The notes: a model not told the origin generated them from the sequence alone. Counted from the stretch's first letter, positions 51,214 to 55,540 are shown. The stretch: 64,000 nucleotides of DNA from Trichosphaerium sp. ATCC 40318 (GCA_038496445.1 JALMLS010000507.1:682001-746000), one strand, 5' to 3'. Program-made: numbers and translations.

Positions 51214-54200
51214 TTACATACTTATTTCAGCGAGTACAATTTGTTCCATAGATTTTTTAAGAAAACCATAGGTGCACACGTCTGGAGTTTTGTTTGACGT
51301 GTGACCTCGTCTTATGCTATTCGAGAAAAATATGAGAAAAAGTTTCGAAGGCAAAAGACATACCGTGCAAAAACTGCGACTGGCGCGAAGAGATCAATAG
51401 GACTGCACAATCTAGCTATTATTTTATAATTCCCTTTCAGATTTTGTTGATTATTTGATGGTAGTATGTACTCTTGAGGGCCATAGCCTTTGATTTTTGG
51501 GTGAACTTTAAGTTTAAAAAAACAAGTGGTATATTTTGGGGTTTTTACGTACCTTTGCAATCTGTCGACATTAAACCGCCCATCCTTGTTCTGTTATTAA
51601 AAGAGTAACAATCTTCTCCTGAAGGTTCTATGACATGAAGTTCAATATTCGCTGTAGGGCTATTCCACACAAGCACAACTCTAAAAAAAAACTTAATCTG
51701 GCGCTCGCTCACAAGTTTTTACCTCAGAAAGTGGTCTATTGATTGACCAAGAGTGATCACCTTAGCTGGAGCATAGCCCCTCAGTTTAGTTTCTAGATCC
51801 CGCTTGAATTTGTCTACATTTTTCATGTTGACTCGTTTTATAACCTCAAACAAGTCATTCAATGCTACAAGTTGGATTTGGTGTCTCTGAAATCTATTTT
51901 CCCATCTTGTCTTTAGGACTTCAAGCAGCGCTTCAAACTGTTTTGATGGACTGTCCTGATACGCTGTTGCTAATTCCCTAGACGTTGAATGAGATAAAAT
52001 TAAGTAAATTCTGCACCAATGTGAAAGCGGTTCTTCGGGCAGAAGCTCCAACACTTTAGTAACAATCTTGCAACACCTAGTACTTAGTGTAAGCAGCTAA
52101 AACAATAAACCTTGCTCGCACAATTTTTGTACTTGATCCTTAAATCCTTCTTGGTTGCTAAACAGTACTTGAGATACCCAAGCGCATAATCTGAACTGCT
52201 GAGGATCTGGTGAGGTCGACATCTCCAATAACTGCGAGAGAATTCGCAAACCTATCATTTCTTTACCAACAGAAATACACTCCTTTGTAGCAGCCTTAAA
52301 TCCTGTTAGCTATGGCAATGTAAACTGTTTAAGTACCAGTACGCCCTCAGCGGTATCACATGTAGCTAATAAATCGTCCAAATTAAAAGCTAAACGAAAG
52401 CCTGGGGTTGCGATATCATCCGGCTCTACTTCCATAGGTGTTGGTGCGAGAATTTTCTTGTTTTCTTCTCGCCCTCTAGATGGAATACTTGCTCCTTCTA
52501 TAGAAACGTAAACATACAAACCTTTTTGTAGTGTTCTTACCAAACCCGTATAGAAATATTGGCCTCTGCAACTTCTTTAATCCTGCTACAACATCCTGAA
52601 CAGATACTGTTCTTCGTTTGCTATGTACTGTGTACAAAATAGTATTTCTTAGAACATTCTCCAAAAACAGTTTCAGTACGCATCGTGCCTCTGAGCAAAT
52701 AGCCCAATGCATACGTTTTACGCCAGCACGTCTAGCTAAACGCTTTATACAAGGTTTAGATATACCTACGAGCGCGTGTTAGCTAGCTAAAAAAGCAAAT
52801 CCAGAGCTACCATGTAAATTGTCTCGTAGTATTTTTCTATGTCTCTTTGCACCACCTTTTCCAAGACCTTTTCCAAGTCGCTTGACAGTGGTGTTTATAC
52901 CAGAAAGAGGTTTGGCGCTTTTACTTGAAACTACTTTGCGAGGCCCGAAAATTCCTGCACGTGCTGCTTTTGATGACACAGTTTTACGAGGGTTGGGTGT
53001 AGATATATTTGTTGCCTCTGGTCGCATATTAATATCGCTGGAATGAACTCTTGGTGTAATTTTATCCCAAGCTGAAGGTGTAGGACCAATATCTACTTCC
53101 ATTTGATCGAATTCCAAGTTCTATTGCGGCAGGTGAATACAACAATGAAGTAACCTTGAGTACCTTTTCCCCATTCTGCTGCAACTCTGTATACTTCATT
53201 GGTACTGTCGGCAAGTTGCTCATTTGATCATGGAGCGAGTCAGGTTCTAGGCTTGAAGGCTTTATTGTGTAATACTTATTGTACTCATCTTTTTGTTTGA
53301 AGTCATGGTGTAGAACCTTGTAGAGTATTTATATGAATGTATCTTTAGAAAAACAAACACGCACGTGATCGTTGACTTGTAGATTGGGTGATGTTAAACA
53401 GTTTATTCTTTTCTCAATAAGATTACTGACGTATTGTTTATAACTGCGTTCTTCTTGTTCTTTTGTACCCACTTTTGATGCCATAACATTTAAAAACGCT
53501 TGTCTATCGCAAGTACTTAGCAAAAAAGCATTGGCAAAAGGTGTAAACAAGCTAAAATCGCTCATTTTCAACTATAACTGTTTTGATGTACCGTAGTTGG
53601 GGCCGCGATTTTGGTGGTTCTATATTATGTTGTATATATGAACCAAGTGTACGCAATATAATCATAGAAGTTTGAGAAGTGACAAGCCCATATTTCTTTC
53701 CAAGTGATTCGACTTTGTCAAATTGATGGGATATTTCATAATTGTCAATTTGTTGCTTAGCCCACGTTCTACGAACCAAACCTTCGATGCTGCATTTTCT
53801 GTTTGTCATCCCATGTACGGTATAAACATGATTTATTGTTGTTTCATTCATGTTGTAATACGGATATATGGTATGAACATGTCTCATGTCTTTAACTTTG
53901 CCGGAGATTAAAACGAATGGAGATTGCATTACTTCGCTGTTGTGTGGAGCAACTAGTAAGTTATCGTTAATACAATTTTTAAGGTAATTTGTATACGCAC
54001 ATTCAGTGATGCCACTATCATAATCTGCTCTAACGAATCTCCAACGATTTTCGGGAAGAAGGATTTCACATGCTATTTCAAAATAATTCTTCGAGGTGTT
54101 CCACAAGTCGTAGAATTGGCCTCCACTACTCGTTGATAATCGCTTCAAAATTAGGCTGTTGTATCTCTCACTCCCGGTTATGCAATGAATAGGGCACGCT

Positions 54201-55540
54201 ATATTGTCTGGATAGTAAGAGTCCGGACCGAGAGTGTTAATGCCATCTGAAAAAAGCAGAACAAAGTCGTATTCACTATTTTGTAACACGGGTTCAACAG
54301 AGCTAATATCAGTTGCTCCGTAGCATCTTATATCCCTAACGTGCTAAAACACATTAAGACGGCCGTATATAGTACAAGAATTGTGTACGAAGATTATCTG
54401 ATCAATATCAGCGGAAGAAAAGGTACGTTTGTCCGACAATGTAAGTGAAAACGAAAAAACATCAACTATACAGACTGAGTCCATTATCGTTAGTAGCGAC
54501 CTGAGTGCTATTGTTTCCCTATCACACTATTATTGAGTATTTAAACATACGTTCTTACCGGTGTATAATATCTGAGGAACGAGATTTAGACGCATCCCAG
54601 AGTATTGCAATTTTCTTAAATGAAACATTTTCCTTTTTTTCATGACAATGGTAGTCACACACATAGTCGTACAAGCAAAAATAACTATACCTAGAACCTT
54701 TTTCAACTACAGTTTCATACATGATATCAAATAGATAACTCCCAAGAGTCATATTCACTGCGATGATACCGTCCATGCAAAATGGTAATACCCAATGACC
54801 ATCCAGAACAGCTGTAATACAATCTTTCCTGTCTGACCCTGAAAATGAAAATGCCGGTAGTTTAAGTATGCGCCCTTTATCTGCTCCAATTGTTACTGTT
54901 TGTTTTTTCCCTATTAATACGCGACCAGAAAGCGTAAAACTTTCCAGTTCTTTTTGTGTGTAGATTGGTAATAAGAGGCATAAATCGGAATAATCTAAGA
55001 AAATGTAAATGCGGGTTTAGAATCTTTGTAAGCGCACTTCTTGGCGTAAAGCCTCCTGACACGGTCAATTGGATTTTCTTCCTTGCTCCAGGGAGTATTT
55101 GGTTTATTTTGGCTCTAAACACATTGCCCACTACTACCTCAGCAATGGCAGTGTCACTTTTTTGGAACTGGTCTGTGTTCGCTGAAAAAGTTGAACGAGC
55201 TTTTTTCTTGCTTACAACAGTTCCTTCTACGAGTATCCCATCATACTCCACAGCGTACCCAGATACGTACGAATCTAGTTAACCGTTAAAAAGCGCCATA
55301 ACAAAGATGGTTGTACTTGGAGCAAGGGTGAACTCAAATGAAGCTGTTTGAACGGTTTCAGGTAGTTTGTTGTTAAATTCAAAGGTATAGGTTGTTTCTA
55401 ACGTAGCAGTGAGAAAATGTGGTTATAAAATGCGTTCACACACGTGCTAAAAAGTGGTCTATTTGGAAGTTAATAGCCAACGACACAAGAGGTAATGTCG
55501 CTTTTGTAATGGCATCTACAAGTACTATACGAGCTTCCAT
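51214..55540 (-). CDS. VIT - vWA - histone H3-tail-like/H4 insert - TPR-like - YfaP(DUF2135) fusion protein
   Basis: VIT: QTTYTFEFNN..FEFTLAPNSYVSGYAVEYDG.LVEGTVVSKKKAR..GNVFRAKI. vWA: ILWDASKSR, YGATD, LLFSDGINTLG. Then YGLVTSQTSMIIL..HNIEPP, the H4 domain, LRILSQLLE/VLELLPEEPLS, and DUF2135: RVVLVWNSPTANIELHVIEPSGEDCY..GYGPQEY. Confidence 0.8.
52541..52880 (-). other. Histone H4 domain embedded in the 51214-55540 gene (split by intron 52766-52810)
   Basis: KGLGKGGAKRHRKILRDNLHG|ISKPCIKRLARRAGVKRMHWAICSEARCVLKLFLENVLRNTILYTVHSKRRTVSVQDVVAGLKKLQRPIFLYGF aligns along nearly all of canonical H4 from residue 8 on. Confidence 0.95.

Follow-up and report, generated by a model that had tools for sequence, protein, structure and literature searches.

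Two H3-tail-like units and a diverged histone H4 form a candidate bait cassette in a VIT-vWA-TPR-DUF2135 protein of Trichosphaerium sp.

Short-motif histone mimicry is represented by viral ARSK/ARKS-type motifs and by the automethylated histone-mimic motifs of methyltransferases, as set out in the excerpted text of two reviews (PMC6028506, PMC11703355). In NLR immune receptors with integrated decoy domains, pieces of pathogen-targeted host proteins are fused into another protein family and vary among its paralogs, as far as the excerpts of the cited sources go (PMC4246468, PMC5067614). Here we describe a minus-strand gene in a 64,000-nucleotide (nt) stretch of Trichosphaerium sp. ATCC 40318 (GCA_038496445.1, JALMLS010000507.1:682001-746000; the window, whose positions are used below), in which two short units resembling the tail of histone H3 stand directly before a diverged histone H4, inside the variable slot of a VIT-vWA-TPR-DUF2135 protein. 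Short-motif mimicry and NLR integrated decoys are the nearest concepts for this arrangement.

As in short-motif mimicry, a stretch outside the histones would copy a part of the H3 tail with modifiable lysines and arginines. The copy differs in its site, which is H3 16-26 with K18 and K23 and not an ARKS site, and in being tandemly duplicated, host-encoded, fused to a whole H4 and known from sequence alone; moreover, its scaffold collects pieces of unrelated proteins. Compared with NLR integrated decoys, the chassis is VIT-vWA-TPR-DUF2135 in place of a STAND NTPase and has no recognised signalling domain, the pieces are short, often disordered and arranged in tandem arrays, and an immune role would be purely conjectural. 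The nearest studied relative of the chassis is Dictyostelium Vwa1, which, like human VWA5A, is an intracellular VIT/vWFA protein; it is reported to work with an F-box/RING protein and to be autoinhibited, while clade B1 of the same study groups bacterial sequences with some protist ones (PMC10539598, abstract and evolution section). The cytoplasmic VIT and vWA architecture and the occurrence in amoebae are shared, whereas the abstract and evolution section of that paper describe no inserted host-protein pieces (PMC10539598). A looser parallel is the bait region of alpha-2-macroglobulin-type protease traps, also an exposed variable stretch midway along a large multidomain protein. The E. coli DUF2135 gene yfaP lies in the operon of the alpha-2-macroglobulin gene yfaS, so that DUF2135 is shared with an operon gene; the present protein has no macroglobulin or thioester domain, and the link would be one of bacterial gene neighbourhood only. 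Literature searches on DUF2135, YfaP and fusions of histones with VIT/vWA proteins yielded no description of the arrangement, and searching full texts for DUF2135 brought up no paper at all.

The motif exon, exon 10, encodes ...ISTPNPRKTVSSKAARAGIFGPRKVVSSKSAKPLSGINTTVKRLGKGLGKGGAKRHRKILRDNLHG and is followed by a 45-nt intron and then by a diverged H4 fold (Table 1). Translation of 52779-53117 on the minus strand gives ...DINMRPEATNISTPNPRKTVSSKAARAGIFGPRKVVSSKSAKPLSGINTTVKRLGKGLGKGGAKRHRKILRDNLHG, identical to the strings quoted in the initial annotation of this DNA; specifically, ISTPNPRKTVSSKAARAG, next IFGPRKVVSSKSAKP and next LSGINTTVKRLGKGLGKGGAKRHRKILRDNLHG are all present. Exon 10 continues the frame of exon 9 across a predicted 43-nt intron (53163-53121) and runs on in frame into exon 11 across the predicted 45-nt one, and the H3-like motifs do lie, as had been claimed, directly upstream of a genuine though diverged H4. 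The two units form a real internal repeat, with a self-alignment score of 41 against a mean of 20.5 and a maximum of 38 among 1500 composition-preserving shuffles. Their cores share only 19 of 33 nucleotides, and Tandem Repeats Finder did not detect the two units in the DNA. Because of this divergence at the DNA level, either the duplication is old or the units were captured separately.

The lysines corresponding to H3 K18 (in PRK) and K23 (in xKAAR) had been described as kept, with alanine at the position of K27. Both statements are true of unit 1; unit 2 reads KSAK and not KAAR, and has proline in place of the alanine. Nothing upstream of unit 1 could be aligned convincingly with H3 residues 1-15, and neither these residues nor those from 27 onward are recognisable around the units. 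No H3 fold comes after the units; the H4 tail and H4 fold come instead. The motif segment is thus not an H3 gene and is at most a captured tail segment. A word search with the motif exon returned 103 matches, all of them ordinary H4 proteins found through the H4 tail, with the H3-like part common to none, and an ESM Atlas look-up of the exon gave no usable match.

The genome encodes a canonical H3 tail, ...GGKAPRKSHAAKAARKHTP, and, on contig C32, an intron-bearing H3.3-like variant, ...GGKAPRKSIASKAARKS. Unit 1 is closest to the variant (PRKSIASKAAR), with 8 of 11 residues identical and all 11 similar, the remaining three being conservative changes. Identity to the canonical and to the universal H3 tail is 7 of 11 residues. 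When the linker of 80 amino acids (aa) was aligned with whole H3 tails by the Smith-Waterman method and compared with 20000 composition-preserving shuffles, only 7 shuffles reached the observed score against the H3.3-like tail (p ~4e-4). As a natural background, one of 153 relatives of the host protein (~900 aa each) reaches the score against this tail, and that relative, P0242, bears a true H3 tail. With a fixed 11-mer reference, H3 16-26, 0-1 of 50000 shuffles reach the score, the 11-mer having been picked post hoc. A DNA-level search of the 70-Mb genome for the pattern PRKxxxxKAAR gave 10 matches, and its reversed control gave 0; six matches are real H3 tails (four canonical H3 genes, the C32 variant and an H3-tail frame on contig C7), one is the motif described here, and three are chance-like cases. 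By itself the motif is moderately significant, suggestive but not decisive. We consider it probable that units 1 and 2 descend from H3 16-26, an origin made likely by the context of the family and its slot.

The H4 part has a tail of the H4 pattern GKGLGKGGAKRHRK, followed by the H4 histone fold; its tail is 65% identical to the canonical H4 genes over 26 aa. After the 45-nt intron the frame resumes with ISKPCIKRLARRAGVKRMHWAICSEARCVLKLFLENVLRNTILYTVHSKRRTVSVQDVVAGLKKLQRPIFLYGF, a fold with 51% identity (expect value, E, 2e-18) to the genome's three canonical H4 genes and with no further copy there; Pfam histone-fold families match exon 11 weakly, below cut-offs. The intron is uncovered by RNA contigs, while an RNA contig joins the 3' end of exon 11 to exon 12. 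This part is therefore a diverged, non-canonical H4 copy inside a larger protein. The claim that lysines K8, K12, K16 and K20 of H4 are kept needs correction at K8: the aligned lysine lies in a perfect 12-nt tandem duplication (LGKG|LGKG, 52854-52877) and thus stems from recent copying of the K12 unit. Arginine occupies the position of K5.

Two further observations concern the histone genes. Two database H4 frames, P0079 and P0015, read through an intron between ..NIQG and ITKP.., the site at which the embedded H4 is also interrupted; none of this genome's three canonical H4 genes has an intron. The canonical histone tails here depart from the usual eukaryotic sequence (H3, PRKSHAAKAARKHTP; H4, RHRKVIRDSIQG), while that usual sequence is retained in the embedded or fused copies, as in RHRKILRDN of the present H4 and in the C7 H3 tail. 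This points either to old captures or to a later change in the canonical tails.

The host family was delimited with a 263-aa vWA piece of the protein, which found 744 relatives in a library of 1.84 billion proteins (best E 4.7e-19, 31-33% identical). A family profile was built from 49 of these and, as in all searches of the gene product, compared exon by exon (hmmsearch). The relatives consist of VIT, vWA, a variable middle, TPR and DUF2135, and 33 of the 49 match Pfam DUF2135; the middle slot is 146-439 aa long, in most of them ~170-215 aa. The host protein shows the tested features of this VIT-vWA-TPR-DUF2135 family, to which it appears to belong, and has no evident signal peptide. Within its slot, exon 8 matches the profile weakly, exons 9 and 10 reach it only at E >1, and no match at all was returned for exons 11 and 12. 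Because exons 9-12 (53316-52343) have no counterpart in the profile and lie between the vWA and the TPR/DUF2135 parts, the H3-like units and H4 are a lineage-specific insertion into the variable slot of the family.

Other members of the family carry other pieces in the same slot. Paralogs and relatives were judged by long intact open reading frames, and paralog slots were read within 1.5 kb of search matches. The paralog on contig C224 (24673-30708, minus strand), with the same chassis and slot, contains an H2B fold (Pfam E 1.4e-9), eight GKGLG units followed by AKRHRRIL, and a piece of H3 33-56, GIRKPHRFRPG|intron|SVALREIRRSRRSAY (SVALREIRR). This unambiguous H3 piece has its intron where two of the genome's canonical H3 genes have theirs, within the same glycine codon and at the same phase; fragments of real H3 genes have thus entered the slot at the DNA level. 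The paralog on contig C5 (293474-297190, minus strand, 1032-1259 and 249-734) contains a SKIP/SNW piece (Pfam E 1.6e-14). Three KKSRWD..TP-type repeats come after that piece; they look like the N-terminal repeats of SF3B1, with no Pfam match. Read by eye, the C87 slot consists of long RS and RGG runs, and the C142, C416 and C317 slots contain an EF-hand-like stretch and a piece of the eIF5A hypusine loop (..RRSRPGKHGPAK..). The last three loci are near-identical and lie on small contigs; they may be haplotigs or recent duplicates.

Among distant relatives, P0159 has ~60 residues of the actin N-terminus (Pfam positions 2-62, E 1.5e-10), and P0254 has two tandem eIF5A N-domains, one scored by Pfam on its cluster-mate P0104 and the second read by eye. 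The slot of P0242, a EukProt protist sequence, holds SGKGLG, an RGG run and RTRQTARRSTGGKAP, which corresponds to H3 2-16. No histone fold emerged when the top 150 relatives were scanned with regular expressions and phmmer, and the H3 tail of P0242 was visible by Smith-Waterman alignment only; a region search with its H3-bearing slot found only P0242 itself. Amplification of units recurs, with H3 16-26 and LGKG each present twice here and GKGLG eight times in C224. The initial annotation had proposed selected mimicry rather than accidental capture of one gene, and the other pieces held in this slot by paralogs and relatives, often amplified, support that proposal. The substrate sink for acetyl- or methyltransferases, named there as an example, would be one conceivable role.

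A separate locus on contig C7 (220518-223549, plus strand, 1455-1566) has an open frame with a complete H3 tail at its start that then leaves H3, and no histone fold follows. About 0.9 kb downstream on the same strand (2387-2997), exons that match DUF4062 and NPHP3-type domains in Pfam encode the N-terminal part of a STAND-type protein. If the H3 tail and these exons are spliced together, they would be a second type of H3-tail fusion in the genome. The idea that the C7 tail ends at an exon boundary, as a captured first exon of H3, was dropped, as the DNA does not show such a boundary.

On balance, we favour the view that the two units are tandemly duplicated, diverged copies of H3 16-26, which together with H4 make up a histone cassette displayed as bait or pseudo-substrate in the VIT-vWA-TPR-DUF2135 slot. 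Specifically, a copy of H3 16-26 would have been duplicated in tandem, diverged and joined with a diverged H4 tail and fold, and the resulting cassette inserted into a variable middle slot that repeatedly takes up short, often amplified pieces of abundant, conserved cell proteins (H2B, H4 tail, H3, SNW, RS/RGG runs, eIF5A hypusine loop and actin N-terminus). An enzyme or pathogen effector that binds, modifies or cleaves the H3 K18/K23 and H4 K12-K20 regions would engage the displayed copy, which on its scaffold would soak it up or report it. H3 16-26 spans the known clipping zone at ~A21-K23, the K18/K23 acetylation sites and the R17/R26 methylation sites; such content fits a bait and is no evidence for one. 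A bait or decoy function, taken separately, is plausible at best and is put forward tentatively.

Several results weigh against this interpretation. The motif exon falls in a gap in RNA coverage (52685-53950), while its neighbours are covered, and we infer its transcription. The library of 1.84 billion proteins contains no ortholog in which conservation could be judged, the best relative being no closer than the identity given above, and PRKxxxxKAAR, which the initial annotation had proposed to look for in homologs, occurs in 0 of the 150 top relatives. Lysines K4, K9, K14 and K27 of H3 are absent from the units, and unit 2 carries KSAK. The likeness to H3 spans 11 residues only, and against the canonical and universal H3 tails the score is reached by 373 and 296 of 20000 shuffles, respectively (p ~0.015-0.02), and by 7-11 of the 153 relatives, taken as whole proteins of ~900 aa. 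The proposed excess over composition-matched shuffles is thus found, more so for the H3.3-like tail than for the other two.

These numbers, with the three chance-like matches in the genome, also speak for a K/S/A/R-rich disordered linker with an internal duplication that would resemble H3 16-26 by coincidence. We regard such a coincidence as unlikely, since shuffles and relatives rarely come up to the score obtained with the H3.3-like tail, each of the four variable positions carries a conservative replacement, the motif adjoins a genuine H4, and H3 pieces occupy the slot of one paralog and of one distant relative.

The units might instead be derived from H3 without mimicking a substrate. Histone tails of yeast and animals are import signals recognised by karyopherins, and basic tails could serve here in nuclear import or retention, or be a neutral leftover of exon shuffling. 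In keeping with this, the units retain spaced lysines and arginines while lacking the best-known regulatory sites of the tail (the four lysines named above), and several paralog slots bear nuclear-type basic or RS/RGG stretches. The tandem amplification of specific units is hard to reconcile with either version; a simple import signal does not fit the non-nuclear pieces (actin, eIF5A loop) in the slot of relatives, and the 1185-codon frame, intact as well as transcribed and spliced wherever RNA contigs cover it, argues against decay. We rate this explanation as still less probable than coincidence.

In a third alternative, the embedded H4 fold would pair with free H3 as a chaperone- or trap-like module, with the H3-like units as accessories. 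When the H4-fold exon was modelled together with the genome's own H3 fold, the predicted complex scored 0.67 and the best of three controls 0.00, with three runs agreeing in at least 94% of contacts and a partner predicted local distance difference test (pLDDT) score of at least 77. In calibration, 51 of 78 solved complexes attained the mark, as did 2 of 108 mismatched pairs. The module is nevertheless the least probable of the explanations, because the score may stem from the model's memory of solved H3-H4 structures and so shows likeness, not binding, the fold is only 51% identical to an otherwise near-invariant protein, and paralogs bear tails without folds as well as non-histone pieces.

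The gene that carries the cassette lies on contig C10 of an assembly of 70 Mb in 642 contigs, with its start ATG at 55540 and its stop at 51216-51214. RNA contigs from the public runs X1 and X2, compared with this gene only, confirm 11 of its 17 GT..AG introns (39-65 nt) by splicing at ≥99% identity, and the other 6 are predicted. A pseudogene was rejected, as the frame is intact and the transcripts are spliced. The RNA-confirmed 48-nt intron at 53953-54000 is itself open in phase, and six-frame translation reads through it as a 263-aa stretch. Pfam VWA had no match to the exon pieces, and Pfam DUF2135 none to the split exon alone.

Table 1. Features of the cassette-bearing gene in the window, with minus-strand features given in window coordinates.
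Feature	Position	Strand	Remarks
Whole coding region, VIT-vWA-[cassette]-TPR-DUF2135 gene	51214..55540	-	As modelled, 18 exons, 1185 codons, no stop inside
Exon 3, VIT domain	55038..55274	-	Pfam VIT E 2.8e-8, above cut-off; family profile 85-151, E 1e-16
Exons 4-7, vWA and following domain	53592..54994	-	Profile positions 234-558, E 1e-9 to 9e-26
Variable slot, exons 8-12	52343..53551	-	Exons 9-12, inserted cassette without family-profile counterpart
Exon 10, linker, two H3-like units and H4 tail	52811..53120	-	Open frame NLEFDQ...DNLHG
H3-like unit 1, PRKTVSSKAAR	52991-52959	-	Resembles H3 P16-R26
H3-like unit 2, PRKVVSSKSAK	52943-52911	-	8/11 residues identical to unit 1
H4 tail LGKGLGKGGAKRHRKILRDNLHG, with perfect 12-nt tandem duplication (LGKG twice, 52877-52854)	52811..52877	-	
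Predicted 45-nt GT..AG intron in H4, between ..NLHG and ISKP..	52766..52810	-	Restores H4 colinearity; CTAAC motif inside
Exon 11, diverged H4 histone fold (ISKPCIKRLARRAGVKR...LYGF)	52541..52765	-	51% identity to canonical H4, E 2e-18
Exons 13-15, TPR-like region	51723..52294	-	Profile positions 744-861; introns RNA-confirmed
Exons 16-17, DUF2135 (YfaP-like) domain	51364..51680	-	Profile 876-941; exon 16 E 1e-13

Taken further, the proposed bait could extend to the family, with the VIT-vWA-TPR-DUF2135 proteins of this protist and its relatives forming an undescribed class of bait-array sensors or decoys whose paralogs show amplified copies of exactly those segments of conserved host proteins that intracellular pathogens modify or cut; the segments in the present protein would then be the K18-K23 region of H3, twice, and the K12-K20 tail of H4. 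This extension is speculative, and we hold it to be somewhat unlikely.

If the segment is a linker only, the locus still shows one family taking up short segments of unrelated genes unusually often. As a functional mimic, the cassette would be a host-encoded, genome-fixed record of the short histone segments worth copying and amplifying on a separate scaffold. Together with the paralogs, it would point to a new means by which single-celled eukaryotes buffer or detect the enzymes and effectors acting on conserved proteins, and effector-triggered immunity could then be tested in organisms other than plants and animals.

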